DNA of 39,181 nucleotides, taken from assembly GCA_002269645.1 (NCBI GenBank), contig NIVC01003736.1, positions 1 through 39,181 on the forward strand, read 5' to 3'. Positions 1,989-39,181 of the stretch are shown here, piece by piece; the stretch's first letter is position 1, and each line of letters starts with the position of its first letter. The notes beneath the pieces are model-generated. The model made no database searches. It was not told the origin of the DNA and saw nothing but the letters and a program-made list of their open reading frames with translations. This stretch comes from Macrostomum lignano (taxonomy: Eukaryota). Both the position numbers and the translations under genes were made by a program.

Positions 1989-3143
1989 ATGATGTTAAAC
2001 AGCTTCCCTAAACTAACCATGCAGAGCATTGGCTGGCCAATTCTATTGCTAAGGCAACAAAATCTTTAATAGGCCCAATATTTCTTTAAAACTCGTAACT
2101 AATTAACTGCTTACTGTAACATTACTTTGCTCCGTCTGCTGAACCGCTTTCTACAAAATATTTTTTCCTTGACGAGGTTACTGCAACAAGCATCGATTCA
2201 TACTGAAGTTCGCATTGTTTAGTTAGCTAGAATTTAAATTCGCGCCAAAAGAGGATTGAAAAACAAGCCGGAAAAATGTATCCTATTCAAACAAAGTTAG
2301 CGTATTTAATTGTTTTAATCAATCCAACTGCATGGTACGAATTTAAACTGTGATGTTGTCCTAACAACCTAAAGAATGCAACCATTTGGCTGTCAATGTT
2401 GTCTCCTTGTTAACTTGTACGTCGAAAATTGTATTTTAGCTGTTAACTTTGTTTAATTTGTCAGACACTGTGATAGGCTACAGTTTTTCCTAACATTTGC
2501 TCCTGTTTGCACGCGCGAACTTCTTTTTGATGTGTGAGCTGTTTCATTGCATCAATTTGAACTGTCGACAGAAATTTCAAAAATTTACTTACAATACAGT
2601 TATAAAAAAATATTTCTCTTTCTAAAACCATTTCTGCATTATAATTTTCCTATGCTTATCGGTTTTCATTGTAGGGCTAAATAAACTATTGTGATATTTT
2701 GCTGTTTGACATTGCGAGTAGAACGTAAACTTATACTGTTGATCAATGACAATGGTTGTCTCAGTATCCAGCCCCTACAATTACATGCATATAACTACCT
2801 TTGCCTCCACACCTGATTGCTTCTATTGGTAACAAATTTCTGCTTTTGTACTGTATCACCTGACAATTAATCTTAGAATTAAAAAAAAACATTTTGTCGA
2901 TTTTAAGCCTGCTGATTTTACTTTACTTCTCTGAAGCAGTTGCTCTAGAAAGTTCTCGAGGATTTTTTAATCAGCGCCGTGAGATGCAAATATAGTCATG
3001 CTAATCTCTGTGTCATTCTGTTAGTGCAATTCCAAGCTTCATTACTTTAATTTGCTTCGCTCTGAGCACGTGTATTTGCCTGGCTACTCAAAATATACTC
3101 GTATGAATTTTGAGCTCCGAACAGCTTATTGAAGTTCGTTTTG

Positions 3144-3725
<582 letters not shown>

Positions 3726-3906
3726 GTCTTTAAAAGTACACACTGGCTTTCATCAATATATCTAGGGTAAATATCCTACTACAAAATCACACACAGCTGG
3801 TACAAAAGACGCATTCAGAAATGCATTCAAACATCAATCAGTTGATTGTGTGCCTTAACAACTTAGCATTTAAATAATCGACGACAAATTAAAAAAGTGC
3901 AGTAGC

Positions 3907-6081
3907 ATGAGTCAAGCAGGAGACACTGTGCCCCTAGTGGAGGAGATCACGGACCAGACCGGGATGTACACCGCGCTCGCCCAGGCCAAGAGCCGGCCGT
4001 TGCTGGCCTGCTTCAGCGCCTCCTGGTGTCAGCCGTGCCGCGCTTTTGCTCCGAAGTTGGAGCGACTGGCCAAGCAGTACTGCCAGGTGGTGTTCGTCAA
4101 GCTGGACGTTGATAAAATGAAGGTGAGAGCAGGGTTTTAATTGTGTGTAAACATTTGCAACAGGGTTAGGGTAAGAGTTAGGTTTACGTCTGGGTGTTAC
4201 ATTAAGTGTGTCTAATAAAGTGCGAAGACGTAAGCGTGTCTAATGTGTTATAATGATTTCTAATGAAGTGTAATGAAGCGCAATGGTGTCTAATGAAGTG
4301 TAATGGTTTTTAGTGAAGTGTATTGGTGTCTAATGAAGTGTAATGGTTTTTAGTGAAGTGTATTGGTGTCTAATGAGGTGTAATGATCGGTAATGAAGTG
4401 TATTGGTGTTTAATAAAGTGTAATGGTTTCTAATGTCAACGAAGTTTGATGGTGTCTAATGAAGCGCAATGAAGTGTAATGGTGTCAATCAAATATAATT
4501 TTAATAGTGTCTAATGTGGTATAAAGTCAATATCAAGGATTCATTAAACGCTCAACATTTTTTTCAATCTATCATATTTGAAATCTACCGTAATTTTTTA
4601 TTTGTCTTCAATTTATAATTTTTTTCTTCACTACTCCGGTTTCACTCAGTTTTATGACTGCTCCAATCTGCAGTGTAGATCTGATCTGTTCTCATTTCCT
4701 CATCCTCTCCAACAAGACAAAGCCCACAGCCCCTGCTACCCTCGTCCCAACTCTCCACGATATTGACGCCGACTTTTCTGTCCCCAACCTGACCCGAGCC
4801 AAAGTCAAAAGCAAGTCCTTCGTAGTTTTCTTTCGTTTCCCTTTAAATATTTCTCTTTCTCATTAGGGCTGCTAAAGCCGCGCGTTCCCTTGAGATTCTC
4901 GTCAGGACAACTCGAACGGGCTGGGGATTGGAAATCCAGGATCGAAGTGGATGTTGTTGACTGCACTTTTCATCTGTAGGGGCGAGTTTGGCGGCTTCCA
5001 CTTTTTTCCTTCCAGTAGATTTTTTTCGTTGTACGACTTGAGAGGCTGTGCTGTGTATTGGACGTAATCAGCTTGCTTCCCACGGGTCTGTGAGGATCTG
5101 GTGGGCCGGAGGGGACACCACAGAAGCTGAAACCGCAGATGTAGAGTGCACTGTCAACGAATTAACCATGAATTTTGTTAGGCCTCTTAATATCGTTTGT
5201 TAGAGAACAAATTTTCATTAATTTCGCTGTTGTAGTATTGTCTTTATTTACAAACTGGAGGAACATGTTGTTGTTTGACCAGTAAATTGCTTCATGTTCT
5301 ACTGGAAATAGTGATTTGTGTAAATTTGAGACTAATTAGTTAATTTAAGTCTAGAGCTGAAGGAATACAAGTAATAATGAGAGGGGTATGGTGATGGAGA
5401 GTGCTAGGGGAAGGGAGTTAATGAGGCATGTGAGAGAGACAGGGGTGAGGGAGACAGGGGTGAGGGAGACAGGGGTGAGGGAGACAGGGGTGAGGGAGAC
5501 ATGGGTGAGGGAGACATGGGTGAGGGAGACATGGGTCGGGGAGACATGGGTGAGGGAGACATGGGTGAGGGAGACATGGGTGGGGGAGACATGGGTGGGG
5601 GAGACATGGGTGAGGGAGACATGGGTGAGGGAGACATGGGTGGGGGAGACATGGGTGGGGAGACATGGGTGGGGGAGACATGGGTGAGGGAGACAAGGGT
5701 GAGGGAGACATGGGTCGGGGAGACATGGGTGAGGGAGACATGGGTGGGGGAGACATGGGTCGGGGAGACATGGGTGAGGGAGACATGGGTCGGGGAGACA
5801 TGGGTGAGGGTGACATGGGTGGGGGAGACAGGTGAGAAAGAAAATGATAGGAGTGACAGAAAGAAGGGACCATTTGGCCAAAAGTTGACCTTTGACCTGC
5901 ACTCGCGCACCACCACACGCAGGACCTGGCCAATCAGCACGGGGTCGAGGTTCTGCCAACCTTCGAGTTGTTCAAGAACGGTTACAGAGTCGGCTCCGTG
6001 TCTGGCACAGTGGACGGAAAAATTGAAGCTTTGCTCAGCTCACACGGAACTTATCCTATTGGACCTGGCGGTTCTGGATGA
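3907..6081 (+). CDS. TXN: Thioredoxin, 2 exons (3907-4122, 5923-6081), ~124 aa
   Basis: Exon 1: MSQAG...FSASWCQPCRAFAPKLERLAKQYCQVVFVKLDVDKMK|gtgaga. Exon 2 after cacgcag|: DLANQHGVEVLPTFELFKNGYRVGSVSGTVDGKIEALLSSHGTYPIGPGGSG*. WCxPC active site and cis-Pro motif LPTF are present; phase-0 junction. Confidence 0.92.
4250..4480. repeat. Degenerate ~10/30-bp tandem repeat (taatgaagtg/taatggtgtc) in the thioredoxin intron
   Basis: Direct inspection of recurring units. Confidence 0.8.
5434..5832. repeat. 15-bp G-rich minisatellite (GGGAGACATGGGTGA)n
   Basis: About 26 units visible. It explains ORFs 5351-5959, 5388-5687 and overlapping ones. Confidence 0.97.
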
Positions 6082-6717
6082 CTGCATATGATCCATCAAT
6101 TTATTGATGTCTAGATACAGAAACACAATATTGCACCTGACATCCATACCTAAATGCCTTTATAGTACTTTCATATACGGTATCAGTAGTACTATTTACT
6201 AATTCATAATTCTTCTTAGTAAGTAGGATAAAAGTAAACTAATTATATAATAACAAAATGTCATTAATTAGCAGTACAGTCTTGCCTATAGGAACTAGTG
6301 AAGTCAGACATAATCAATTATATAACTACAATTGCATCGCATATAGTCTCTTTGCTTTAGACAAGCTGATGATGGCCTGCAGAACATAAAAAGTTGATTA
6401 ATTACTTAATTCTAGGATACAAGCATATATACTACTCACTACTGAACAGTAGTCTTTAGTAAGTAGAAGATGTACTTGTCCACGAAAAGCGTTTTTCTAG
6501 GTCTTTTTGATCCAATAATATTTCTGGAAGATGGCCGGACCAATCCAGTAAGGTTTGACGGCTGGTATAGCAGTCTGTATTAAATGGTATTTAAAGTGGG
6601 AGACTTGGACTGACACATAGGGATTAAACATTAATTCAAATATTTGATGTGGATTCCAAACGTTGTAAGTTTTCAATTGTTCTGCGCACAGGTAAGTCGC
6701 AAAATTGAACTTTTTTA

Positions 6718-7080
6718 TCCATCCGCTCATCCACCCATCCATCCATCCATCCATCCATCCATCCATCCATCCATCCATCCATCCATCCATCCATCCATCC
6801 ATCCATCCATCCATCCATCCATCCATCCATCCATCCATCCATCCATCCATCCATCCATCCATCCATCCACCCATGCATCCATCCATCCATCCATCCATCC
6901 ATCCATCCATCCATCCACCCATCCATCCATCCATCCACCCATCCATCCATCCACCCATCCATCCATCCATCCATCCATCCATCCATCCATCCATCCATCC
7001 ATCCATCCATCCATCCATCCATCCATCCATCCATCCATCCATCCATCCATCCATCCATCCATCCATCCAACCACCCACCC
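6718..7080. repeat. (CCAT)n microsatellite
   Basis: Near-perfect tetranucleotide run. Confidence 0.99.
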
Positions 7081-7394
7081 ACATATATTTGTCTCCGTTT
7101 CTGGCCAAGCCACTTGATCTTACAAACATCCCTCACTCAGCAGACGCCTAACCGGCTTTATCCATCAATCATATCGCACATCTGCCCACGCGTTAACCTC
7201 ACAGCTAGCTAATTGGTCATTAATAAATGATTCCGATGGTCACTAGCGGCTTTAACTTTATCGATAAACTTGAATGATCTTAGCGAACCTTCCTGTCGAT
7301 AAAGAACCATATACTTTTTGATAAGGTGTAGTAAGTTAACAAAAGTTAACACTGCTGGAAACAGGAAGAGAAAGATAGAGGGTGAGAAAAGTGG

Positions 7395-8045
7395 GAGACG
7401 GGAGAGGGAGACTAAAGAGGAGAAAAGGCAGGGAGAGGAGATGAGAGGAGAAGGAGAGGAGAGGAGAGGAGAGGAGAGGAGAGAAGAGAGAAGAAAGGAA
7501 GAGGAGAGAAGCGGAGAGAGTAGAGGGAGAGGAGAGCAGAGAGGAGATAAAGAAGACGTGAGGAGAAGAGAGAGGAGAGGATAGGAGAGGAGAGGAGAGG
7601 AGGAGAGGAGAGGAGAGGAGAGGAGAGCAGAGAGGAGATAAAAAAGAGGTGAGGAGAAGAGAGAGGAGAGGAGAGCAGAGCAGAGAGGAGATAAAAAAGA
7701 GGTGAGGAGAAGAGAGAGGAGAGGAGAGGAGAGCAGAGCAGAGAGGAGATAAAGAAGACGTGAGGAGAAGAGAGAGGAGAGGAGAGGAGAGGAGAGGAGA
7801 GGAGGAGAGGAGAGGAGAGGAGAGCAGAGCAGAGAGGAGATAAAGAAGACGTGAGGAGAAGAGAGAGGAGAGGATAGGAGAGGAGAGGAGAGGAGGAGAG
7901 GAGAGGAGAGGAGAGGAGAGCAGAGAGGAGATAAAAAAGAGGTGAGGAGAAGAGAGAGGAGAGAAGAGGAGAGAAAAGGAGAAGATGGGAGAGAAGGGGA
8001 GAGGAGAGGAGAGAGGAAGAACAGGGAGTGTGATGAGAGAGAGAG
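7395..8045. repeat. Polypurine (GAGAG)n array with higher-order duplicated blocks
   Basis: Almost purely A/G strand; the block gagcagagaggagataaagaagacgtgaggagaagagag recurs several times. Confidence 0.95.
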
Positions 8046-8391
8046 CGCTAATACAAGAAAGCTTATCTAGGAGGGGAGTGCCCGACATGATCAGAAGCCG
8101 AGCTCTAATAGCTAGCCTGCATTGCATGTCAACGATCGCTTATGGTAGCACAGGCAAAATGTCGACTTAAAAATAGAAATTCGACAGCTAGTAAGAAACT
8201 TTCTCTCGTGGGGATTTCATTATTGCAGGTTTTTAACCAATAGCCATCTGTCAGTCAAATCTACATTTTATAAAAATAACAAAATTCAGGTAGGAAGAGA
8301 GAGAGACTGATCTACCTGTGCCGCAGCTCGGGTCCTTAGCCGAAGACTTGCAAGCCAGTCTCCCGAGGGGCCGCAGCTAAGGGACACGCGG

Positions 8392-11300
8392 ATGCTGCAC
8401 CACCAGCTGCTCTCCTCGACGACTGACTTCGGCAGCAGCAGCTTCACTCAGCTGATGGCGCTGCTTCTGGCGCCCGCTGTGTGGACCTGCCTGCTGGCGC
8501 CCTGTGTCTTGATCAGCGAACTGGGAGCCGACACGCAGCAGCTGAGGTGAGCGAGAGCACCTTTGCTTTGCCTAATTATCTAAGAACTCAGAGCAGAGCA
8601 GACACTCCATAGACACTTCACCTTCATCTGTCAACCGTGCAATTCCGCAGAATCGGCAACAACAATGACACAATGCGAGAATTCATTGCGAAAATGTTTG
8701 AAAACTACGACAAAACCATCCCTCCGTCGATGTACACTGGTGAGTGAAACTCAGAGGAGCGTTTTCTAGCAAAAGTTATGGAAATTAAGAGTTTTAAAAA
8801 TGAATTTAAAGGAGCGTAACTAATAAATTTACATTTCAAATGACTTTTGCCGATGAAAACCGAATCGATTGCTCATGTTTTTCATCATGTCGTTCAACCC
8901 ACTGCAACACGCGCGATACTATAATATTTCAGTTTGTTTATCATTGCAACAATTTGTGAGACAAATTTTCAATTTGCGCGAAGCTGTCTGGCTCTGAAGT
9001 ACTTTTGTGAGTCCACTGGCCCATGGTAGCCTAGAATTTGATATCCAGATCAACCCAGAAACTCTTGAAGCAATTTTATGCAGATTTGACGCTTGCCTTT
9101 CAAATCTTTGGCGGCATTTTAGTCCCCGACACATCCGCTGCCTCGCACCGAACTCAGGCTCAGAACTCAGGCTCAAGTGGAATATGCAGGATTTACAGGC
9201 ATCGGAGTCTCGCTTTTAGTAATATTTTGTGAGAAACAGAATTGTTAAGCCACAAATGTGACTAGTTTTTTTTCCAATCCAGATGCCTTTATCTAGGGCT
9301 CCATGACCTGTTCTCGTTTGAATTTGCTATTAGAAAACCCGTGTATTAATGGCTCACATGTGTACAGAGGATTTATAGGTACCAAGCCAACGCATGTACA
9401 TTGCGCACATGCACAACATGACGTCATGCTTTCAGGCTCTGTCCTAAAGGTGTATGTGAGCGTGATGATTCACGCTATTAGCGGTGTGAACGAGCGAACA
9501 ATGGTGAGTAAAGGTAGATTTATGCCGACTTGGAATCAGTCCTTGATCCTCTAAAATACTTGGAAAGTTCAATCCAGAAATATGAGAGTGGCATTTGCCT
9601 GTGAAATATTTTGAAGGCCCTCTGTCTACCTCACTTAAAAGTACACTCAAAACATGTTAAAGTTTCCAACCCGTAACCATAATGGCCAACAAGTGGGCAG
9701 CTTTGATTAAAATCTTGCCAAATCTAATAGCATTGTGACGCAAATTGCATCAATTCACACGGTTAAGACAAATTACGTCATTTTGGGCTGAGCTTTGAGG
9801 AAAATGGACCTCTTGTTCCGTGGTGGAAACTTCACCATTTTGCAGAGTGTTGTACATGGTAGATCTTCTTATTCTTCTAACCTCAGTAGCTCTTGAAACT
9901 TCTGCACCATCTTACACCTTACTTAGAATAATTAGTGTGCATAATACAAATAAATCTAAACAAACTTCCGAACCATTATGGGTAGCTGCGAGCATAGATA
10001 TGAGACTTCACTGATGCATATTTCAATCTATTTATAAAACCATAGCATTTATTGCTTGCATTTTGCAAGACAGTTATTATAGAGTGAAATCAATTTGTAC
10101 TATTTAGCACGCTGGCTTTCATGTTATGCACTGAGCAAGGCTTTTGCACGTACATTTTTTAAATCAAAACTGGTGTACAACGTACAAGTTTATATATTTT
10201 TTACGAACATCAGCTATATTAGAGATCTTCATTTGTAGACCTCACTATTGGTATTATTATTATTATTACTATTTATTTAAAAAAATACTCTGCTCAGGTA
10301 ATACCACGATAGTTAGAGTATCACTGATGGTGCACGCCATGAGCTCCATCGATGTGATTGACATGGTAAGAAGCCGAAGGAGCGCTCACACTAGCTATCC
10401 AAAATTTTTTCTACTTAACATTCTGTTTAATAAGATGTCTGATTTTTGTGTAATTTGGGCGTTAGTGAGGGAACAGCGTGTGTACACATGCTAGTGTACA
10501 TTGGGGTAAGAGTGTTCGTTTTATCGATTGACTACTCTCTCTCTCTCTCTCTCAGATAGATTGGGGATGGTTTAGGCTCATTACTCGTACGAGCGTAGAA
10601 TGGGATGGGCTAGACAGTGTGTACATTAAGGGGTGAGCGGTTCTATTTTTAGGTAGCACAGAGTACATCATGCCGTAAAATTGGACTTGGCCGTTCTGTT
10701 CATTTCATGGGATGCGGTGAAAATAGTGGCGTATTTTTTTCTTGCTTTTATTTACCTTTTTGAACTAACAAGACTTTATTTCCGAGTAATTAATATTCTT
10801 AATTGTGGATCAGATTCAGACGGAACTGACAATAAATATTGTAACTGAAGCATTATATATAGACATCGCTATGAAAACAAATGAAAGCTACCAGATTATC
10901 TATTTTCGTATTTATCACACGGGTAGAAGTGGAAACACTTTGAAAAAACTTATGCAATTTGATTTTTTTCAGAAACTACTAGAAAGATAATTATATTCTT
11001 TCATAAATGTTATATCTACTTCAACACTAAGCTATGGTTTAAATTACTGTTGCTTATTGACGAATGCAATTAAACTTGAAAACGATTGGCCAATAGTCGG
11101 TTTAAATCAGTTAATACACAGTAAAACAAAATGCATAAAAATTACTATTAATTTTTGACAAAATCAGAGCACACGCTTTGCAAAATGCAAAATCCACATA
11201 TGACAAAGTTTCTAAGAACCTAATTTTTGTTTTCGATTCTACTAACAAAGAAGTTTTTTTTCTGTAGTGTCGCTGCATGCTGATATACGAAGTAGCTATC

Positions 11301-14300
11301 GCGCCTTTAGCAATAAATGTAGTTTGCTAGCACTTTTTCACTGTTTATTAAGACTAATCAAACGATTTAAATTCATTTACAAGAAATATAACATTTTTAG
11401 TATCATTTTGACTAATTTAGCAGCATATTGGAACTGTCAAGTGACGATCACTATCCAAATCCCACAGGACTACTCGGTGAACATGTTCCTGCGTCAGTAC
11501 TGGAACGACACCAGGCTAGCCTATGCTCACCGGGGCTACAACCAGTCACTGACTTTGAACTCAAAGAAGTCCGAGTTATGGGTGCCGGATCTCTACTTCA
11601 TCAACGAGAAAGAGGGCTCGTTTCACGAGATCACGACTCCGAATCTGCTGCTGAGAGTCAACCCAACTGGTCGTGTCACGTACAGCCAAAAGTAAGCCAG
11701 TTTTTATATTTTTTTACCGGAATTATTTGCTGTTACAGGTTAATTGACATACATCTGTCTTCGAACTGTCACACTTGTCTGTTACAGGTTAACCATAACA
11801 ATCTGTCTTTGATCTTTCACACTTGTCTGTTACAGGTTAACCATAACAATCTGTCTTTGATCGTTCACACTTGTCTGCTACAGGTTAACCATAACAATCT
11901 GTCTTTGATCTGTCACACTTGTCTGTTACAGGTTAACCATAACAATCTGTCTTTGATCTGTCACACTTGTCTGTTACAGGTTAACCATAACAATCTGTCT
12001 TTGATCTGTCATACTTGTCTGTTACAGGTTAACCATAACAATCTGTCTTTGATCTGTCACACTTGTCTGTTACAGGTTAACCATAACAATCTGTCTTTGA
12101 TCTGTCATACTTGTCTGTTACAGGTTAACCATAACAATCTGTCTTTGATCTGTCACACTTGTCTGTTACAGCTGTTAACCATAACAATCTGTCTTTGATC
12201 TGTCACACTTGTCTGTTACAGGTTAACCATAACAATCTGTCTTTGATCTGTCACACTTGTCTGTTACAGGTTAACCATAACAATCTGTCTTTGATCTGTC
12301 ACACTTGTCTGTTACAGGTTAACCATAACAATCTGTCTTTGATCTGTCACACTTGTCTGTTTCAGGTTAACCATAACAATCTGTCTTTGATCTGTCATAC
12401 TTGTCTGTTACAGGTTAACCATAACAATCTGTCTTTGATCTGTCACACTTGTCTGTTACAGGTTAACCATAACAATCTGTCTTTGATCTGTCACACTTGT
12501 CTGTTTCAGGTTAACCATAACAATCTGTCTTTGATCTGTCATACTTGTCTGTTACAGCTGTTAACCATAACAATCTGTCTTTGATCTGTCACACTTGTCT
12601 GTTACAGGTTAACCATAACAATCTGTCTTTGATCTGTCACACTTGTCTGTTACAGCTGTTAACCATAACAATCTGTCTTTGATCTGTCACACTTGTCTGT
12701 TACAGGTTAATCGACAGACATCTGTCTTGGATCTGTCACACTTGTCTGTTACAGGTTAATCGACAGACATCTGTCTTGGATCTTTCACACTTGTCTGTTA
12801 CAGCTGTTAGCCATAACAATCTGTCTTTGATCTGTCATACTTGTCTGTTACAGGTTAACCATAACAATCTGTCTTTGATCTGTCACACTTGTCTGTTACA
12901 GCTGTTAACCATAACAATCTGTCTTTGATCTGTCACACTTGTCTGTTACAGGTTAACCATAACAATCTGTCTTTGATCTGTCACACTTGTCTGTTACAGG
13001 TTAACCATAACAATCTGTCTTTGATCTGTCACACTTGTCTGTTACAGCTGTTAACCATAACAATCTGTCTTTGATCTGTCACACTTGTCTGTTACAGGTT
13101 AATCGACAGACATCTGTCTTGGATCTGTCACACTTGTCTGTTACAGGTTAATCGACAGACATCTGTCTTGGATCTGTCACACTTGTCTGTTACAGGTTAA
13201 TCGACAGACATCTGTCTTGGATCTGTCACACTTGTCTGTTACAGGTTAATCGACAGACATCTGTCTTTGATCTGTCACACCCGTCTGCTTCAAATTTAAT
13301 GAACCAATCACTTAATCACTGTAATAAAGTCATGAATACACAACTAAATTATTTTGTTAGCTTTCATTTTTTGTTAATAAGTTTCCAAGACATAAGGACT
13401 GAAAAATGTTTGTTGAACAGCGCAAACAAGAGACAGGGAGAAGACAAAAAGACAGATGGAAGACAACATAGAACAAGACAATTTGCACTCTACCTTGGCT
13501 TGTAGAACTCTGTGTAATTAAACTCTACCAACACTATCGCTCTCTCTTGCTCTCCCAACCCTGGGTAGGAACCACCCAGGAAAAGCTTCAGACAAGACAA
13601 AAACGATTTTCTTTGAAAATCTAAAGCTTAAAAATGGGATTGAAAATAATGGGAATAATTATGAACGTAACGTGAGACTCTAGTCCCTACAATGATATAA
13701 TATTACACAGTGGGCAGTGAGCGCGTCTTTGACGACATCATGTCGCAAATCCTGAGCACATATACTCATCACTTCAGGCTGACCGTGAAGCTCTCCTGCA
13801 ACATGGACTTGAAGAAATTTCCTATGGATCAGCAGAGATGCCACTTGAAGATGGAAAGCTGTGAGTTGTGTTTTGGCTTGTTCGTGGAATAAGGGTGCGG
13901 TTGTAGGCCTTGTGCGCTGTCAAGTTTCCCACGAAAAATGGGATATTAGGTGCTTGTTTTGGGGAAGCCGAACTTTTCTAAAATCTGTAAGAGAACTGTA
14001 GGATTGACTGAAATTCCTTGTCAAGTTTCCCACAGAAATATCCTCCGATGGGAAGGTTCCCATGGGCGTATAGTTTGCAGTCTTTTGTTAGCAGTAAATT
14101 GTCAACATGAAGATTGAATTTTTTAGACTTTTCAAATTGCTATTGAAGTTAGTCAAGAGAATCACAAGCGCGCGGATACGTACGCAGTCATACGCACAGG
14201 AACACACTCACACACGAGTGTACAGCGGCCCTAACTTTATTTATCGTTAGGCATGTACACTTCACTGTGCCTTGGCGGTTGTCCTTCAAGGCCGTTAATT

Positions 14301-17300
14301 GCACGAGCAGAGCCAAGCCGAGATTCCAATTTAGTCCCAAATTTAATGTGACTGCACTCGGAATCGAGCCTGGGCTGCTGGCAAATCAGAGCATTAGGCT
14401 ACGTTTGAAAATTATTAAGGGCAGCCACAGTTTTAAAGAATTTTGCTTTTGGAATACTTTTTAAAGGTATACAACAGTAGCAAAGTGGAGCTTTTTTTAA
14501 GAGACTCTGCTTTTAAATTGTACCTCAATCCGAACCTGCATGAGTTCCTACATCCAAAGCGGTCCCTTTTGACACTATTTAAGAAATAATAATGATTTAA
14601 TGTAACGTGAAAAGTGTGCATCTTCCAGACGGTTACACAACTGAAGAGCTGATATTCGAGTGGGTTAACAAAACCAAAGATCGCGTGCAGTTCAGCGACG
14701 ACTTGGAGCTGCCGGAATTCGTCACACCGCCGAATATCAGTACGGAGAATCGGGTGGTAAAATACCTGACAGGTGAGTTGAGAATCCAAAGAGAGGCGCT
14801 GACTAAGAGTGCAGAGAGAGGCGCTGACTAAGAGTGCAGAGAGAGGCGCTAACTAAGAGTGCAAAGAGAGACGCTAACTAAGAGTGCAAAGAGAGACGCT
14901 AGCTAAGAGTGCAAAGCGAGACGCTAACTAAGAGTGCAAAGAGAGACGCTAGCTAAGAGTGCAAAGAGAGACGCTAGCTAAGAGTGCAAAGAGAGACGCT
15001 AGCTAAGAGTGCAAAGAGAGGCGCTAACTAAGAGTGCAAAGAGAGGCGCTAACTAAGAGTGCAAAGAGAGGCGCTAACTAAGAGTGCAAAGAGAGGCGCT
15101 AACTAAGAGTGCAAAGAGAGGCGCTAACTAAGAGTGCAAAGAGAGGCGCTAACTAAGAGTGCAAAGAGAGGCGCTAACTAAGAGTGCAAAGAGAGGCGCT
15201 AACTAAGGATGTTAAAGGGTGCCAACAGGGGAGCTAAGAAGCGCTAACTAAAGTAAGTACAAGGGCTGGTGCCAATAATTATGTAAGTGGTGTCAAATTG
15301 CAAGGTTTTATTAAAGTGACAAAATGGCTGAGCGAAATTCATAGGGTTCATGTACTTAGAAACCCAGCTAATTTACATAAAACAAACTTTCCAGGAAACT
15401 ACTCCTATCTGATTGCGACATTCTACTTGAATAGAAAGTCAGGTTTTTACCTGATCCAGACCTACATACCGAGCATCCTGATTGTCATACTCAGCTGGGT
15501 GTCCTTCTGGATCGATGTCAGAGCTGTGCCGGCCAGGATTAGCCTTGGACTGCTCACTGTGCTCAGCATGACTACTCAGAGTTCTGGAGCGTTGGGCCAA
15601 CTGCCTAGGGTGTCTTATATCAAGGTGAATTGGACTGTAATGTGGGAATTACCTTCAGATGATTATTTAAGTGTCTGAGCTGCAGGTGACATTAGCTATA
15701 GCTGACTAATCAGGTGTCTTAGCTGCCGGTGACATTAGCTGTGGCTGACTAATCAGGTGTCATTAGCTGTGGCTGACTAATCAGGTGTCTTAGCTGTGGC
15801 TGACTAATCAGGTGTCTTAGCTGTGGCTGACTAATCATAGCTGCAGCTGACTAATCAGGTGAAATTAGCTGCCGGTGACATTAGCTGCAGCTGACTAATC
15901 AGGTGTCATTAGCTGTAGCTGACTAATCAGGTGTCATTAGCTATAGCTGACTAATCAGGTGTCATTAGCTGTAGCTGACTAATCAGGTGTCTTAGCTGTG
16001 GCTGACTAATCAGGTGTCTTAGCTGTGGCTGACTAATCAGGTGTCTTAGCTGTGGCTGACTAATCAGGTGTCTTAGCTGTGGCTGACTAATCAGGTGTCT
16101 TAGCTGTGGCTGACTAATCAGGTGTCTTAGCTGTGGCTGACTAATCAGGTGTCTTAGCTGTGGCTGACTAATCAGGTGTCATTAGCTGTAGCTGACTAAT
16201 CAGGTGAAATTAGCTGCAGCTGACTAATCAGGTGTCTTAGCGGCAGGTGAATTTAACTGTCTCTTGCTTCATGGGGTCATTCGGTGCTTTACGGGGTCAT
16301 TCGGTGCTATTCATCGTGCTTCATAGGGTCATATTTTGCTTTCTTAATCTTGTTACATTGACTGTATAGAATTGCCTTAACCAAGGTAAGTAGAAGAATA
16401 ATTTGTCGATATAACCTTAGAAGTACTCAAAAACAAAGGTAAACTGCCATGAACTTTTGTAAGCTGTTAGACTTTACTTCACGAACGTGACACACCTACA
16501 ACGCAAGGGAAACTGTCTCATGGTAAACTATGGTACAGCTAGAACTGAAACACCCCCTATGACACTTCACCAGAAATATTCCATTCGCATAAAATCTTTG
16601 ACTGCAAGAGCCAAGAGATCAGGAGCAGCTCCACAGACTGCATTGAGAGCAGGCATTAGATTTACTCCCTTACCCAGCCACCATTCGCCCCCAAGGCGTG
16701 CGATGAAAGAAGGATGAGATAAGGAGAGAAATAAGGTTTCATCGATCACTCTCATCTCGGGTCTCCTTGCACGCCGCTCTACAAGAGGGTTTTTTCCCAC
16801 GAAAGATTTGTTAGTTGCGGTGCGCACTTGTGCAAAGCCTTCGCGAGCATCAATGGATCCGAGTTTATGGAGAAAATGTTGGAATTTTTCGATGAGGAAA
16901 TGCTTACGCGTGTGTGTGGTTAAGACAGCTTCTCGATCGAGCCTTCTCGAATCGTTCAGACAAAACTGGAAGACAACCTGAAAGGTTTCGAAGGTCGAGC
17001 ACTTTCTGTACTGGACACTTCCATTCCGTGGGTTGGCCGTGAGGTAATTCCATTAGACAGCGAAGGCGGCGCTCAGAACATAATTTTGATCGGTGGGGTT
17101 TCGAAGTGGCTTCGAACAGCTGCTTTCTGTCAGATGGTTGAAGTGGCAGCGGTCGAGAAGGCCTGTGATTTAGTTTTCCGTGGATTTTGTTGCGTGTTGA
17201 GAATGCAGCTCATTTAAAGACAGAAATAGCTAATAGTTAATGTTTAAATTTGAGCAGCATAGTTTATCTAAGTTTAGCATTGGGTATAATGAGTAGGGTA

Positions 17301-18876
17301 GAATAGAGTAGAGTATTAGTATAAAAACGTAGATTAGTGTAAATTACAGTAGATTTACAGATTTACAGTAAATTACAGTGGAGCAGAGTATAGTAGATTA
17401 GAGCAGAACAGAGCAGAGTAGATTAAAGTAGATTAGAGTAGATTAGAGTAGATTGGAGTAAATTAGAATAGCTTAGAGTAGATTAGAGTAGATTAGAGTA
17501 AATTAAAGTAGAGCAGAGTAGATTAGAGTGGATTAGTGTAGATTAGAGCTCTCTTAAAATAATCAGTATCCAGAGGCAACTCACTCTCTAATCTGGCAGA
17601 TTTCAAGAGAAGCCCCTTAAAGCAGCTGAGAACGTATGCAGTATAAATATAGACCAGCACCCATCGATTTCCCTCAGTGGAGGAAGAAAATCACGGGGGA
17701 TGTGGATACAGAAACTCCTCCCTTCACTTCTCTTGTCACGCCCCGCTGCTCGTCGTTTGAAACTCTGAGAGAAACTTGAAGAAAACGACCAGCTCCCCAG
17801 TGACCCACTGACCCATACATGACTGATCTGCCAGTCTGGTGGCGCATAACTGAGCCGGTTGGGTTGAGCTGCACTCTCCTTTAGGCTTTTTTTCGCTGCC
17901 ATTTTGGCAACTTTGTTTTAATTAAACTTCATGGAGCTAGTGGGGTCTGATGTGCTAGCGGCCCAGGCTCGATTCCAAGTGCAGTCGGATTATTTTTTTG
18001 GGGCTAAATTGCAATCTCGGCTTGGCTCTGCTCGTGCAATTAACGGCCTTGAGGGCCAACTCTAAGGGCTAAGGGTGTACATGCCAAGCGATTAAAGTTA
18101 GGGCCGCTGTACACTCCTGTGTGAGTGTGTGCCTGTGCGTATCACTACCTGCTTAGTGGAGTCGGCTGAATCGGCAGCACACATCCCCTGTGTGTAATAA
18201 AAATGAAAACTTCATGAAGCTGTGAGAAAAATCTGAACTGTCGTTAACAGCATCTCTACTTGCTCTGGTGTAAAAGTACATCTTTAAGAATCTTCTCCAA
18301 TTTCTAATTAGATTTGCTTGGCTTGTGCCAAATCTCAGATTTCAATTTACAAACGATGGGGAAATTGAACCTGATCAGTGTTTTCAATTAATCATTTTTT
18401 CTGAGCACTTGTGCAACAATATTCATATAGAATTACTGAGTCAAGTCTAACAAAATCCGAGTCCCAGTCCCAGTTCAATTCCGAGTCCCAGTCCCAGTCC
18501 CAGTCCTAGTTCGATTTCGAGTCCAAGTCCGAGTCCCAGTCCCAGTCCCAGTCCCAGTTCGATTTCGAGTCCAAGTCCCAGTCCCAGTCCCAGTCCCAGT
18601 CCCAGTTCAATTCCGAGTCCCAGTCCCAGTCCCAGTCCTAGTTCGATTTCGAGTCCAAGTCCGAGTCCCAGTCCCAGTCCCAGTCCCAGTTCGATTTCGA
18701 GTCCAAGTCCCAGTCCCAGTCCCAGTCCCAGTTCGATTTCGAGTCCAAGTCCCAGTCCCAGTCCCAGTCCCAGTCCCAGTCCCAGTCTCAACCTTAATAC
18801 CAGTTCGAGTCCCAGTCCCAGTTCCAGTCCACGTCCCAGTCCCAGTCCCAGTCCCAGTCCCAGTCCCAGCCCCATT

Positions 18877-18908
<32 letters not shown>

Positions 18909-21788
18909 AAGTCCCAGTCCCAGCGAGAGTCAGCAAGTTTGTAAGGCTGCTCATCCATAAAAGAGTTCAGAGCTCCCAACTCGCGCTGGTATTTGGTCAT
19001 CACACTTTCAGTGAAGTGCCAGCACAAAAGTAACCTGGGCGCCTTCTATTCTCCTCTTGCCTCAGGGAAACCTCGCTCTCAGCTGCTTCGTGACTTTGAT
19101 GCCTTCCAGGACTTCTCTCTGAAGACGAATAATGCAATTTGGCTTCCTCTCAGGGCTCTAATTGAAATTCTCCTTTGGGGAATAAAGGCTGAGAATGTTA
19201 CGCTGAGCAAAATTCTCTGATCGAAGGCTCTTTGCTTCTTTTTCCAAGTGATCTCTTCTGATCATATTTTCTCGGTGCCAACTTACTAAGCTGCGATTTT
19301 TTCAATTCTTTTTTGGGGCTACAACTATGACTTCACACAGTCTATCGCAGAGATCGCACTTTTGGTTTAAAGTTTTCACATAACATTTCCATTGTGCGAA
19401 ACTGCCCCCTCCCCCGTAGACTCAGACCTTCGATTCTTACCAACCTACCAACCTCCACTCAACCCTAAAAAATTCCCATCCAACGCTACCAACCTCCCAT
19501 CCATCACTGCCAACATCCCATCCAACAATACCAACCCCCCATCCAACAACCTCACAACCAACAACCTCCCATCCAACAACCTCACATTCAACAACCTCAC
19601 ATCCAACAACCTCCTATCCAACAAGTTCCCATCCAACAACCTCCCATCCAACAACCTCACATCCAACAACCTCCCATCCAATAACCTCACATCCAGCAAC
19701 CTCACATCCAACAACCTCCCATCCAATAACCTCACATCCAACAATCTCCCATCCAACAACCTCACATCCAACAACCTCACATCCAACAACCTCCCATCCA
19801 ATAACCTCACATCCAACAACCTCACATCCAACAACCTCCCATCCAATAACCTCACATCCAACAATCTCCCATCCAATAACCTCACATCCAACAACCTCCC
19901 ATCCAACAACCTCCTATCCAACAACCTCACATCCAACAACCTCCTATCCAACAAGTTCTCATCTAACAACCAAGCATCCAACAATATCCCACCCAACACT
20001 ACCAACCTCCCAATCAACAGGCCATCGATGTGTGGATGTCCACCTGTCTCGTGTTTGTATTCGGCGCCCTAATAGAGTACGCCATCGCCAATGTTCTGGC
20101 CAGGCGTCACAGCTCTCTGGAGCGCTGGGAGAATCTGCGAAGCATCCTGGACTCCGGTCAGCAGGCACCAGACCACCAGGCCGCATCGATGCAGTACCAG
20201 CAGCTGCAACAGACACGGCTGACAAGCGGCCGGCTTCACTCCGGTGGAAACGGAGAAGCCCAGGCTGCTCTGCTGAACCAGGTGCAGAGCTGCGGCCACA
20301 GCAAGGTGAGAAAGTTTCTGCGCAGAGTTTTGTTGGTACGTAATGTTACGCAAGTATTTTACTACTAATTTACGCCAGTATGAAGAAAAGTCACTTTAAA
20401 GTCTGAGCTCGGTTCTTTCTACTAATATTGAGCTGTCACTGATGCACACATTGTGATGTCACTGATGCACACATTGTGATGTCACTGATGCACACATTGT
20501 GATGTTACTGATGCACACATTGTGATGTCACTGATGCACACATTGTGATGTCACTGATCCACACATTGTGACGCCACTGATGCACACATTGGAACAACTG
20601 GTCGCTTCCATCAGGTGAATAGTGCAGCTATATTCTACCAGTAAAACAAATCTTTGGTCAGATAAGCACACAAGACTTAGTGACAGTTTATCTGCCAGAG
20701 GCCGAGTCTTGGATTTTCAATGACAGTATACGAAGCACGTCAGATTGACAGCTGATAAAAAATGATTTCGCGAAAAAATTTTTGACATGCGAACAAATTT
20801 TCAAGCTGGCATCTTCCTCAGGTTTTGGAAATGGCCAGTCATTTCAATTACTTTAGTGACAAGAGTGACTACTTATAAAATTTGACTATTTCAGTAGTCA
20901 AAAAAGAGTTTTATCTATCTTTGCCAGATGTGCAACCGACAGCTCAGCCGCAGCTATTGCGCGGCGGATCTGAAGGCTGCGTACGGCTGTTCAGTCCAAG
21001 GACTGGGGGGGGGGAGCCGCCAGACACACCCTCAATTACACCAGCTAATGCTGGCACCCATTTTACAGCTGGGTGACCTGAAACAATGCAGAGTTAAGTG
21101 TCTTGCTCAAAGACGCAAATTGTTTCGAGTGGGTCGAGAATCGAACCCCCGACCTTCAAGTCGCGAGTCCGACGCTCTAACCTCTAGGCCAAAACTATAA
21201 TATAGTAACAGCTTCCAAAACCTACTTTGAGAGGCTGATTGCCCCAAAAGTTTCATGTTTCTAGGGAATAACTGAGAATTAGAATTAGAGCTTCATCCCC
21301 CCAAAGTCATGGCGCCAGGGTGCCTGCAAGCCGTGTTGCGAATACTGATTGTTTATACTGACATCTTCACAACAAACAACTCACAGCATAGCCGGCCGGA
21401 GGACATTCCCCTGGCCTACATGAATCGCGATCTGGAATCCACTAATCGCAACTCCAACTACGACGTCAATGACTCCGACAGGCTGCTCCAGCGCATCAAC
21501 GCGCATTCCGGACCTATCGCTGCTACTTCGGCGTCTTCGGCTGCTTTTTCTGCAACAATTGGGCTGCGGCAGAGACAAACGGCAGCAACGCAACAGCAGC
21601 AACAGCAGACTCAAGTTGAACCACAGCGGCAGGTGCCGTCGCCATTCGGCAGTCAAGACGGCTACCTGGAAGAGGACAATGTCAGCAGTGCCGAAATGAT
21701 TGATCGAATTTCCCGGGCCGCGTTCCCTTTGTCATTTGTGCTGTTCAATCTCGGATATTGGGTCTACTACATCTATATTGCTGAGTGA
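8392..21788 (+). CDS. Anion-selective Cys-loop ligand-gated ion channel subunit (glycine receptor / GluCl-like), 9 coding exons with an alternative exon 3
   Basis: Exons: 8392-8546 (hydrophobic leader), 8651-8739 ([10 protein letters not shown]), 9436-9503 or 10298-10365, 11468-11691 ([19 protein letters not shown]), 13778-13860 (Cys loop [15 protein letters not shown]), 14629-14772 (YGYT), 15395-15624 (M1, PAR-M2), 20021-20305 (M3 [21 protein letters not shown]), 21387-21788 (M4 [21 protein letters not shown]). All junctions are GT-AG with matching phases. Confidence 0.95.
9436..9503 (+). CDS. Cys-loop receptor alternative exon 3a (68 nt)
   Basis: tttcag|GC TCT...ACA ATG|gtgagt; encodes (G)[22 protein letters not shown]; phase 1 to phase 0. 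Confidence 0.88.
10298..10365 (+). CDS. Cys-loop receptor alternative exon 3b (68 nt)
   Basis: gctcag|GT AAT...GAC ATG|gtaaga; encodes (G)[22 protein letters not shown]; same length and phases as 3a. Confidence 0.88.
11733..13285. repeat. 48-bp minisatellite (acacttgtctgttacaggttaaccataacaatctgtctttgatctgtc)n in intron 4
   Basis: About 30 units with sub-variants (a +2 nt gctgttaacc unit and an aatcgacagacat unit). Confidence 0.98.
14165..14400 (-). mobile_element. SINE-like interspersed repeat, family B, copy 1
   Basis: The reverse complement matches 17950-18145 (ggcccaggctcgattcc...atctcggcttggctctgctcgtgcaattaacggccttga...agttagggccgctgtacactc) and carries a B-box-like GGCTCGATTCC. Confidence 0.75.
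14787..15206. repeat. 25-bp minisatellite (gagaggcgctaactaagagtgcaaa)n in intron 6
   Basis: Period of 25 read directly; starts ~14 nt after the donor site. Confidence 0.97.
15681..16255. repeat. 27-bp minisatellite (gctgactaatcaggtgtcttagctgtg)n in intron 7
   Basis: Period of 27 read directly (e.g. 16021 to 16048). Confidence 0.96.
17290..17550. repeat. Degenerate 10-bp repeat (agattagagt)n
   Basis: Direct inspection. Confidence 0.85.
17950..18145 (+). mobile_element. SINE-like interspersed repeat, family B, copy 2 (inverted relative to copy 1)
   Basis: Similarity to the reverse complement of ~14190-14395 over ~190 nt. Confidence 0.75.
18450..18922. repeat. (CCCAGT)n hexamer array with higher-order units
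   Basis: Direct inspection; explains the poly-LG and poly-TG ORFs. Confidence 0.97.
19500..20010. repeat. 15-bp C/A-rich minisatellite (CCAACAACCTCA/CCAT)n abutting the exon 8 acceptor
   Basis: Direct inspection. Confidence 0.96.
20435..20590. repeat. 23-bp tandem repeat (gtcactgatgcacacattgtgat)n
   Basis: About 6-7 units; period of 23. Confidence 0.93.
20905..21200 (-). mobile_element. tRNA-derived SINE, family A, copy 1
   Basis: Minus strand: A box TGGCCTAGAGG, B box GGTTCGATTC, then ttgagcaagacacttaactc...ccagctgtaaaatgggt (CORE/Meta-like central domain). The 3' tail gcaatagctgcggctgagctgtcggttgcacatctg is shared with the copy at 24442-24610. Confidence 0.8.
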
Positions 21789-29028: not shown

Positions 29029-31023
29029 ATAGCTTCGCCTACAGCAATGTAACTATATAAAAAAGATATATAAAGAAATTTTAGTATGATTCTATACATA
29101 CATAGTGCAACCTTCGAAATTCGGTTGGCCATGCAACTTAGTTTTAACAAAAATGCAATGTGGTTTTTGGCCAAAAAATGCGACTTACATGTAAAGAAAC
29201 CTAGAGCAAAATTAACGCAACTTTGGGTAAACGGCAGGAGTAACTATGACTGTCTTATTAAGGCAAAATGCCTCATCATCTACTTGTACTACTTTTATTA
29301 ATTTGGGTGGGCATTTTTGCAACTTACATTGGTTGGCCACCAAATTGGTCAGCCAGATCGGCCGACTGTTGCACATGTATGATTCTATATTGATGCAAAG
29401 TGAACTAGAAATAGCTGCATCTATTAGACCTACTCAAAGTAGTAATATAAGTTTTCTTATGAATAATATAGCTGATCAATATTGAAAATTATTGTCATAA
29501 TTTTCTCTTTAGTAGTTTGGTAAAAGTTTGAAAGCTTTGTTGTTATAAGATTATATATAATAGATCCTAATGCACTTCAGCTACTTTGAATTTGCATTTT
29601 AGTTAAAGTTAGTAGATTCCATTGCTTATTCTACATTTTACCATTCTGTTATGGATTACACATTTTACCAAGCTATTCCATTCCAATCCTGCCATAAATT
29701 CTGCATTTTATTAGGTGCCCTAAAATAGTCTGGCAGTAAATTAGCTATTGTCAAGTTCCATTTATTAAATTATTTTGACTAGAAAAGTACTGTACAAACT
29801 ATTTTAAGTACAAATAGCTATTTTTAAAAAACTAAGCTTAATCAGGCACTAAATTTTATGCTTAAAACTTGTTATAATATATCTGACACCAAAAAGCTGC
29901 AATAGTCTATGGCCAAAATGGTTAACAAATATCAGCATTCGAAACACTGATATGCTATCACAAACTTATCATAGATATTTAATGTTAGACCCACCTATTT
30001 GCCTGCACTAAAACAGCCACGCAGACCATGCGTGCCCACTCTGTGTTAATTTATATAACCAGCTAACTATGCAAAAAAGCAAATAAGATGCGTGGGATAG
30101 AAAATGCCACCACCTCAACATCACCTAATTGACCCTTGCTATCTCAGCAACTCCATTTAATACACCTTGGCATCTCAAAAAATTCTCCTAAACTATATAG
30201 GCATAGGAATGATGGGATGAATATCCCTTCTCCTCACTTTTTTATATTCCTATGCCCATGCTATAGACACTTGATCATTCTATATAATAGCCTAACAGTT
30301 ATGACTTTTCATTGCTTTTCTGCCTTGAATTAACATTAATTGATAGCTGCTAAATATCATTCTCTGACGCATATTAGAACTATATTGGACCTACAACTAT
30401 GTATATGACCTATATTATAATCTAGATCATAATTTTTTAAATTCAATATTGTTTTTTTAAAGATTGCTATACAGAAAAGCTAAGATGTTTTGGTGTCTTA
30501 TTAGCATGATAAATGTGATTTGTATAAATTCTTAACAAAAGAAAGGCAACACAATTTTTATAAGCATGTTTATATATTGAAATGGTTGCAACATTAGTCA
30601 AGAAAGCAGACTAAGCAATCTAGGATGCCAATGTTCATGGCACTGCTCTTGCAAGATAAAAAATTTTTTTGTCAAAGTTAGTTTTTTACATCTATCTAGA
30701 TTATTCTTTTTTTAGTTTTAGCCAACAGAAACACAATTTTTTTAAATCCATGAGCCATGAGATCCATAAGCACTTTTATTTATAGAAACATAAACTTTGT
30801 TGAACAAAAAGTAAAATTACAGAAAGCAAACAATAACTACTATATATTTTTTAACTATTTTAACACTAACATTATCCAAGATTACCTCGCATGATATAAT
30901 ATCTAATGAACTTATTTCTAATATTTCAGATTCAGCAGTTTTAAAACTCTGGATTGACCATAATCTATTTAAGTAGTAATTAGTTGTTACCAACTGAAAT
31001 CAATTATAGAAAATAAAATCTCA

Positions 31024-32194
31024 ATGGGCAACAAAGTGGCTCGTTTTATGCGCAACTACGACGCTGAGCGTCGCGCACTGAAGCTCCTGTCACGCAATGA
31101 GAAAGCTCCAGTCAGAGCTCCCAGGTTCGAATCCGAGAGAGAGATGCTCAGGCAGGTAGCGAAAGACCCAAATCTGGATGAAGCTGTCAATAAAAAGGAT
31201 GCGAGTCTGTTGGAAAATCTTAGCAAAGTCAAGGTTGTGAGCTCGGACCCGGTGACGCCACAGAAAACTGAGCAACAAAAACAGCAGAGACCTCTGCCGC
31301 AGAGGCGGTACTACATGCCTATTGGCGAACTGGGAGTGCCGGAAGTTCCACCAGAGACTGTGCCGCCTGGTAGGCTGACTCTGATGCAGTTTCAGGTAAA
31401 TAACCAGTGTAGCTCGTATGTTGTTTTAACCTTTTCGCGCCGGAGCTAGAAATACAGAAGCTTCGTTCCTGCCGACATGGTCAGCAGGGCTAGCCATAGA
31501 CTATATAGCTAGAATCTTAATGCGCCGCTTTGCAAAGCCTTTCTAGCCAAGAAGGGAGCATTTTATACTTGGCTTGGACAAATCTAGGGTCGAAAAAAGC
31601 AGTTTCAAAGTGCATTTCACTTAATGCTCACTATATAGATTATGCAGTGTGTACACTCGATATCTAGCAATAGACACTACAGTTCACTTAAAAATCTGCA
31701 AGCAGGCCTCTTTGAAATAGAAAGCACTGCACCTCCTTAAGGAGAGACCAAACTGGAACAGCTTGTTGTAAGGTATTTATTTCGATTGTAAAAGGAGTTT
31801 TAAACACTGTCAAAAATAAAGACGCACTCACTCACACACGCTCACACAGGGTCTGACTTGCTTATTGTTCGAGGCATATACAGTAGCTACACGGTATAGA
31901 TATCTCCTAGGCCCATAACAATGTGAATGTGGCAGCGTATGGAATCAAACCCGGGTTCTTAGTGGTAAATAAGTTAATTAATTCCTTGTGTATCAAATTG
32001 CTTACTGCTCGGAACGTTCGCAGGAGCTGTTAAACACGCGTCAGCCGCAGGGTACCGGTCTCCCGTCTGAAAAAGTGCAGGAACTGCTTGACTTCTATGC
32101 TCCACTGATGCAGCGCAGTGCGAACGAGCTGAAACAGCTGACTCATAAAGACAAAGACGGCGCTGCTCAGCGTGAGGAGGCTGAGCTGAAGTGA
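31024..32194 (+). CDS. NDUFAF4: Complex I assembly factor NDUFAF4 homolog, 2 exons (31024-31395, 32024-32194)
   Basis: MGNKVARFMRNYDAERRA...APRFES...KKDASLLENLSKVKVVSSDP...VPPGRLTL matches the family pattern MG...RNFN.E.RA, APR, KD..LL..LK.V.V.S.DP, P.G++. Phase-0 cag|gtaaat...gcag| junction. Confidence 0.85.
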
Positions 32195-38689: not shown

Positions 38690-39181
38690 ATACCATGGCT
38701 CACAGGGAGGGGGGATTGCTGAGATGCCAAGGCTCACAGGGGGGATTGCTGAGATGCCAAGCCTCACAGGGAGATTGCTGAGATGCCAAGGCTCACAGGA
38801 GGGGGGTTGCTGAGATGCCAAGGCTCACAGGGAGGGGGTTGCTGAGATGCCAAGGCTCACAGGGAGTGGGGTTGCTGAGATGCCAAGGCTCACAGGGAGA
38901 TTGCTGAGATGCCAAGGCTCACAGGGAGATTGCTGAGATGCCAAGGCTCACAGGGAGGGGGGTTGCTGAGATGCCAAGGCTCACAGGGAGTGGGGTTGCT
39001 GAGATGCCAAGGCTCACAGGGAGATTGCTGAGATGCCAAGGCTCACAGGGAGGGGGGGTTGCTGAGATGCCAAGCCTCACAGGGAGGGGGGATAGCTGAG
39101 ATGCCAAGGCTCACAGGGAGTGGGGTTGCTGAGATGCCAAGCTCACATGGGGGATTGCTGAGATGCAAGCTCACAGGGAGA
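38690..39181. repeat. ~29-33-bp minisatellite (ttgctgagatgccaaggctcacaggga-Gn), running off the window end
   Basis: Constant 24-nt core with a variable G-rich spacer. Confidence 0.96.

Follow-up and report, generated by a model that had tools for sequence, protein, structure and literature searches.

Two homologous 68-nt exons, candidates for mutually exclusive splicing, in a Cys-loop anion-channel gene of the flatworm Macrostomum lignano

Why does a Cys-loop anion-channel gene of the flatworm Macrostomum lignano carry two versions of the same small exon, and does it use both of them? The gene lies on the + strand of contig NIVC01003736.1 (GenBank assembly GCA_002269645.1), which was analysed over its full length, from position 1 to position 39,181; we refer to this whole 39,181-nt stretch as the window, and positions given without an accession are positions in it. 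A sequence-only reading of the window had proposed that two exons between exons 2 and 4 of this gene, here called 3a and 3b, are mutually exclusive alternatives. We find that the best explanation, to which we give a probability of roughly 0.6, is that 3a and 3b are tandem duplicates of an ancestral 68-nt exon 3 and are spliced mutually exclusively, yielding two predicted isoforms of 559 amino acids. The region in question is organised as follows:

9436-9503, + strand: exon 3a, 68 nt, tttcag/GCTCTG...ACAATG/gtgagt; loop 2 GVNERTM (canonical type)
9504-10297, + strand: intron between 3a and 3b, 794 nt; donor GTGAGT, acceptor CAG, both U2-type
10298-10365, + strand: exon 3b, 68 nt, tgctcag/GTAATA...GACATG/gtaaga; loop 2 SIDVIDM (divergent), NTT sequon

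The two exons stand next to each other, are equal in length and have their own splice sites, and each joins exon 2 (end 8739) in phase 1 and exon 4 (start 11468) in phase 0, as expected of tandem exons that are used in place of one another. They are identical at 31/68 nucleotides (46%) and at 9/23 amino acids. Because 68 is not a multiple of three, an mRNA that contains both exons or neither of them acquires a premature stop: joint inclusion reads GTA ATA CCA CGA TAG (VIPR*) and ends at codon 108, 12 nt into 3b, while joint skipping shifts the frame and ends at codon 188 in exon 6, with at least three exon junctions downstream of the stop in each case. Neither joint inclusion nor joint skipping is thus productive. 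On all of these points (homologous exons of equal length and phase with canonical AG/GT flanks, an immediate stop on double inclusion, a frameshift on skipping both) the sequence-only reading was borne out. Under mutually exclusive splicing, a productive mRNA would contain exactly one of the two exons, and the isoforms would differ in these 23 residues only. Transcripts with both exons or neither would carry a stop far upstream of the last junction and would be removed by nonsense-mediated decay (NMD). The ratio of 3a to 3b would be set by a selector, either trans-acting factors or intronic RNA pairing, and the choice between isoforms would swap loop 2 at the interface of the extracellular and pore domains.

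Both exons resemble the third exon of the receptor family. A position-specific scoring matrix (PSSM) was derived from 82 distinct homologs of phyla other than that of Macrostomum, using the 23 residues that correspond to this exon, and was applied to every stop-free 23-residue segment in all six frames; since its training segments came from alignments with the 3a isoform, the matrix may tilt slightly toward 3a. Exons 3a (20.7 bits) and 3b (13.7 bits) occupy ranks 1 and 2 of the 24,989 segments scored (mean -37.4, standard deviation 9.3), lying 5.5-6.3 standard deviations over the mean, and they are again ranks 1 and 2 among the 87 open candidates in which 68 nt are flanked by AG and GT. In a comparison with Pfam, the extracellular domain scored 175.7 bits with 3a and 171.8 with 3b, as against 154.3 with a reversed 3a and 141.2 with the exon deleted, a gain for Neur_chan_LBD over the reversed-sequence control of 21 bits (3a) and 17.5 bits (3b). 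When other loci were scanned with the PSSM, two copies were found in both M. lignano sister loci described below and one copy per gene in annelid control loci. Aligned to GlyR alpha2, the variable segment (residues 82-104 of the window's protein) corresponds to the beta1 strand and the beta1-beta2 loop, as had been claimed from the sequence; both exons are homologs of the family exon 3.

A further stretch between 3a and 3b, at 10167-10235 (+), was considered as a third exon copy. Although it holds PSSM rank 3, its score is a weak 4.7 bits, it lacks AG/GT flanks, and a 1-nt indel in both sister loci disrupts its frame; it is not an exon, and is either a decayed third copy or a chance match.

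The assembly holds three copies of the region that contains a thioredoxin gene and the channel: the window, NIVC01000896.1 (L006) and NIVC01003374.1 (L007). Between exon 1 and exon 4 they differ by 1-3.4% substitutions plus indels, mostly in repeats, L006 and L007 standing 2-4% apart from the window, and over a wider region BLAST gives 94-98.5% identity; three near-identical copies fit the duplicated genome of M. lignano. Exons 3a and 3b are both present in all three. In a three-way alignment of these copies, 0/68 columns are variable in 3a and 0/68 in 3b, with no indels, whereas the three flanking introns show 2.0-3.8% variable columns and 97 gapped columns, the 3a-3b intron standing at 3.8% plus indels.

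More distant relatives bear on 3b. A protein search with the spliced product returned a 100% identical UniRef fragment from M. lignano (P0001) together with models of diverged M. lignano paralogs at 84% (P0003) and 75% identity (P0121). P0001 and P0122, the UniRef models for the window's copy of the gene, start in exon 4. In P0121, exon 3 is of the 3b type, with 21/23 residues identical to 3b and the junctions as predicted here by homology, and P0003 begins inside a 3b-type exon. The type recurs in a related animal: on L001, a contig of 4 kb in an ENA metagenome assembly, positions 553-620 form a 68-nt 3b-type exon between AG and GT, and exon 4 lies after it. Between the window and L001, 3b shows about 0.32 substitutions per nonsynonymous site (dN) and about 2.1 per synonymous site (dS), with codon-position identities of 15/22, 18/22 and 9/22 at first, second and third positions. 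Because the paralogs P0121 and P0003 share the type and the comparison with L001 gives this dN and dS, the data point clearly to a functional 3b and to purifying selection on the 3b type.

Three observations on other members of the family were made in passing. In P0124, a UniRef model of the 75% paralog, exon 2 is skipped and exon 1 is spliced straight onto the 3b-type exon, so that translation runs through 3b and the first part of exon 4 in the wrong frame until the frame is regained; this is a prediction artefact and shows how poorly the gene family is annotated in M. lignano. A second contig from the same sample as L001 (L002, ENA ERZ25070786) contains at 7927-9318 an intronless Cys-loop channel gene of 463 amino acids, about 4.9 kb downstream of a reverse-transcriptase open reading frame (ORF). 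Its loop 2 (SINVVDM) is like that of 3b, and the gene is possibly a retrocopy made from a 3b-type mRNA of a related animal. Finally, two transcript-like contigs from Logan (P0021 and P0091) have Val at the position of the loop-2 Glu.

It is on the status of 3a that the readings divide. The main rival holds that only 3b is used, and that 3a is a recently silenced relic (or a former canonical exon) or is included too rarely to function. Several observations that favour it, or that otherwise weigh against a pair of duplicated exons in joint use, should be set out together. A protein search based on an alignment of the two N-terminal isoforms found five proteins, none of them with 3a; the four from M. 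lignano are all gene models in UniRef, and of these the two running in frame across exon 3 (P0121 and P0003) use the 3b type. L001 shows the 3b type alone, with no 3a-like exon in the upstream stretch covered, which is 551 nt only. The conservation of 3a among three near-identical copies is not significant by itself, since at the intron rate 0/68 variable sites would arise with a probability of about 0.11 in either exon taken singly and of about 0.012 in both together. Neither GenBank contig of the sister copies L006 and L007 has the channel among its called genes, and this absence suggests low expression. Lastly, 3a and 3b have in common four residues (Ser9, Met11, His13 and Ala14 of the 23) that are found in only 2%, 0%, 0% and 1%, respectively, of the 82 outgroup sequences, and either gene conversion or co-adaptation to the remainder of the beta-sandwich, instead of a recent common origin, could account for these rare residues.

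Set against a relic is the condition of 3a itself. It beats 3b on the family profile, its donor is a perfect GTGAGT, and its frame is open and its exact length kept; its loop 2 (GVNERTM) fits the family consensus S-[IV]-N-E-x-T-M, whereas that of 3b (SIDVIDM) is without the conserved Glu. When neutral decay was simulated from today's 3a, 22% of runs still combined intact splice dinucleotides, an open frame and a score of 13.7 bits or more after 0.1 substitutions per site, against 1.9% at 0.25, 0.02% at 0.5 and none at 1.0; this caps the neutral substitutions since any loss of constraint at about 0.1-0.25 per site. The split between 3a and 3b is much older than that, given their 46% DNA identity and the presence of the 3b type in the 75%-identical paralog. 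Since the 3b type predates the split from that paralog and from L001, at which synonymous sites are saturated, 3a would be at least as old as that split. Profile fit, simulation and age combine into a strong, if indirect, argument that 3a can have been unconstrained only very recently, if at all, and we consider a relic unlikely.

Less likely again is regulated unproductive splicing, in which a single exon of the pair would be the standard choice, and adding the other or leaving out both would send the transcript to NMD and lower expression. Both non-canonical patterns do give early stops with many junctions downstream, and the gene seems poorly represented in annotations. A poison exon, however, needs no fit to the protein, yet 3a keeps family-consensus residues over all 23 positions, including N-E-x-T-M in loop 2.

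With mutually exclusive use of both exons still preferred, the age of the duplication can be considered. The sequence-only reading had left two options, deep conservation and a further convergent duplication. Besides the four rare residues common to 3a and 3b, three of which are present in the exon of L001, the annelids are informative: Paralvinella has a single exon 3 (L005, 4691-4758) that matches in phase and is exactly 68 nt long, implying that the exon boundaries are ancestral and the duplication is not, and Dimorphilus has a single copy in which exon 3 is fused to exon 4. In 10 clusters of GlyR-like proteins from nemerteans, bivalves, gastropods and cephalopods, which include many RefSeq X1-X10 isoforms, none of the members listed varied in exon 3. 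The shared rare residues, single annelid copies and invariant spiralian isoforms together favour a duplication that took place in the flatworm lineage and is convergent with the ones in GLRA2, Rdl and GluCl. Of the two options, deep conservation is accordingly the disfavoured one. The opposite view, that both exon types are anciently conserved and descend from the same duplication as vertebrate GLRA2 3A/3B or insect Rdl/GluCl 3a/3b, can appeal to the common 68-nt length and phase and to a 3b-like loop 2 (V for E) in three more distant channels (P0021, P0091 and P0109). We hold it to be very unlikely, in view of four shared residues that are nearly absent from other phyla, the single-copy annelid homologs, the uniform exon 3 of the nemertean and mollusc clusters, and the treatment of this channel family as convergent in a published survey, which lists the GLRA2/GluClalpha/avr-14 family among convergent tandem exon duplications (PMC9741552). 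A chance resemblance, in which one of 3a and 3b would be no exon at all, can point to a DNA identity of only 31/68 and is effectively refuted by the two top PSSM ranks, the exact length, phase and AG/GT flanks, the Pfam gain, and the recurrence of the pair in three loci together with its absence from the control loci.

The gene that houses the pair has nine exons, with GT-AG introns throughout, and either choice of exon 3 gives an uninterrupted ORF of 559 amino acids. The remaining exons are:

8392-8546, + strand: exon 1, ATG at 8392, signal peptide, donor GAG/gtgagc; 98-100% conserved in L006 and L007
8651-8739, + strand: exon 2, ccgcag/AATCGG ... ACACTG/gtgagt; ends in phase 1
11468-11691, + strand: exon 4, acceptor cccacag/GACTAC, phase 0 entry; loop D FLRQYW, beta2 onward; protein 100% identical to P0001
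13778-13860, + strand: exon 5, Cys-loop, C-x13-C
14629-14772, + strand: exon 6, loops B and C, without the loop-C cysteine pair
15395-15624, + strand: exon 7, M1, PAR motif, M2
20021-20305, + strand: exon 8, M3 and start of the M3-M4 loop
21387-21788, + strand: exon 9, M3-M4 loop, M4, stop codon

The product matches Pfam Neur_chan_LBD (PF02931) with 172.2 bits in the 3a isoform and 168.4 bits in the 3b isoform, and Neur_chan_memb (PF02932) with 142 bits in both. The C-x13-C Cys-loop in the extracellular domain marks it as a subunit of the Cys-loop (pentameric) channels, and the PAR motif before M2 places it in the anion-selective branch (GlyR, GABA-A and GluCl). Its closest solved relatives are GlyR alpha (350 bits), GABA-A beta3 (281 bits) and GluCl (248 bits), and the Arg of loop D is present (FLRQYW). 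The channel had earlier been labelled GlyR/GluCl-like, and GlyR alpha is indeed the best solved relative. In the alignment, though, loop C has no cysteine where GlyR alpha has C...C, so that the second disulfide of GlyR alpha and GluCl proper is absent, and by our own comparison loop B (ESYGYT) and loop C appear to resemble those of GABA-A beta. For these two reasons GlyR/GluCl-like is, as far as sequence can tell, a broad label only, and it does not name the ligand. A tblastn search of the protein against the window found no further duplicated exons in the channel gene.

What would a switch between 3a and 3b do to the channel? In loop 2, N-E-R-T (net charge 0) in 3a stands against D-V-I-D (net -2) in 3b, where the conserved Glu is replaced by Val and two Asp are present; the charge difference put forward from the sequence is therefore real. 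Judging from the behaviour of loop 2 in GlyR and GABA-A receptors, the swap would probably shift gating efficacy and apparent agonist sensitivity, an effect to be expected from the change in charge and the loss of the conserved Glu. In mouse Glra1, the spasmodic mutation A52S lies in the equivalent exon and lowers glycine affinity, and N46K also lies there (PMC3484359). The two-residue difference between 3A and 3B of GLRA2 alters agonist potency, which is higher for alpha2B (PMC3484359). In insects, exon-3 variants of RDL and GluCl change residues near loop D, those of GluCl differ in sensitivity to channel blockers, and nAChR alpha6 belongs with RDL and GluCl among the receptors with exon-3 alternatives (PMC2064938, PMC13512814). 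The NTT sequon that had been singled out in 3b is present; it is not conserved, reading KTT in the paralog P0121 and RAT in L001, and glycosylation is for that reason unlikely to be the selected difference between the two exons.

The feature is of a known kind, a tandem-duplicated alternative exon 3 of a Cys-loop receptor, and involves no new mechanism; what is new is the phylum and the radical swap of loop 2. A literature search found no report of a duplicated alternative exon 3 of Cys-loop receptors in flatworms. In the vertebrate GLRA2 3A/3B pair (GlyR alpha2A/alpha2B), the same part of the protein is varied as here, and the alternative exon is also 68 nt long and in the same phase. The GLRA2 exons differ in two residues, whereas 3a and 3b differ in 14/23, with the loop-2 Glu lost in 3b, and the divergence is thus far greater than in GLRA2, as previously claimed; the pairs would also differ in origin, and the Macrostomum subunit is without the loop-C disulfide. 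Insect Rdl, GluCl-alpha and nAChR alpha6 likewise possess tandem clusters of two or three exon-3 copies, used mutually exclusively and changing residues near loop D and loop 2. There, transcripts and function are established and different orders share highly conserved exons, whereas the flatworm pair is predicted from genome sequence and is much more divergent. As in other frame-incompatible exon pairs policed by NMD, the exon length is not a multiple of three, and double inclusion or skipping leads to a premature stop; NMD in such pairs clears mistakes only and does not choose the exon.

How the choice would be made is a separate matter. The 794-nt intron between 3a and 3b rules out simple steric exclusion, as the sequence-only reading had maintained, and with donors of the GT-AG U2 type on both exons an incompatibility of U2 and U12 sites is ruled out as well. 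Two perfect 13-nt inverted repeats occur in the flanking introns, 8798-8810 with 11366-11378 and 10056-10068 with 11178-11190, where a first-order Markov expectation gives a mean of 0.12 (P of at least two = 0.004). The candidate pairing arms are:

10056-10068, + strand: candidate RNA pairing arm, complementary to 11178-11190; pairing would loop out 3b; one A>G change, seen in L006 and L007, leaves a G-U pair
11173-11190, + strand: candidate RNA pairing arm, partner of 10056-10068 and of 9836-9850

In linking the 3a-3b intron with the 3b-4 intron, such that 3b would be looped out, some of these repeats recall the docking/selector systems of Dscam1 exon 6, 14-3-3xi and ATE1. Unlike those systems, the repeats here are AT-rich, their energies are ordinary, and their positions do not provide one selector per exon; many pairs of intron tiles have stronger predicted duplexes. 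Several candidate arms vary among the genome copies, and the sister copies offer no informative covariation. The search of the flanking introns for docking/selector pairing, which had been proposed as a check, thus yielded inverted repeats with ordinary duplex energies and no convincing pairing. Counts of Nova-type YCAY clusters and of Rbfox GCAUG motifs next to the exons showed no enrichment.

If both exons are used, one more phylum has duplicated this small exon of inhibitory Cys-loop receptors, and the beta1/loop-2 module is strengthened as a preferred evolutionary site for the tuning of receptor gating. In this scheme the flatworm duplication would be independent of those in vertebrate GLRA2 and in insect Rdl, GluCl and nAChR alpha6. 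A bolder version, which we regard as an even bet, is that flatworms independently duplicated the same 68-nt exon and that the copies were then driven far apart, producing a splice-controlled swap of the gating loop in which one form keeps the Glu and the other has Val with a relocated negative charge. If that is true, exon 3 of Cys-loop receptors would be a recurrent hotspot of convergent tandem exon duplication in at least three phyla. The pair is unusually divergent, the loop-2 Glu being lost in one member, and a comparison of the two isoforms in oocytes would amount to a natural experiment on the coupling of extracellular domain and pore. M. lignano is also capable of transgenesis, so isoform-specific knock-outs are feasible. 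For annotation, the consequence is that public M. lignano models of this channel family are truncated or show one exon choice only.

Several features surround the channel gene in the window. Upstream of it lies a thioredoxin gene of two exons, 3907-4122 and 5923-6081 (+), encoding 124 amino acids and corresponding to GenBank BOX15_Mlig033669g2, with an intron full of microsatellites. Dense mini- and microsatellites fill channel introns 4 (11700-13290, with units of about 48 nt), 6 (14780-15250, about 25 nt) and 7 (18450-20010), and dense satellites also lie upstream of the channel, in intergenic sequence, at 3107-3770, 5400-5830, 6700-7210 and 7300-8070. These satellites yield long spurious ORFs and explain most of the length differences among the three genome copies. 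Farther downstream, an ORF at 30973-31446 (+) contains a UPF0240 domain (82 bits), which we take to be the family of the complex I assembly factor NDUFAF4; a gene that continues near 31982-32191 probably has it as its first exon. A multi-exon beta-tubulin gene occupies 36045-37888 (+), its first large exon matching Pfam Tubulin with 148 bits.

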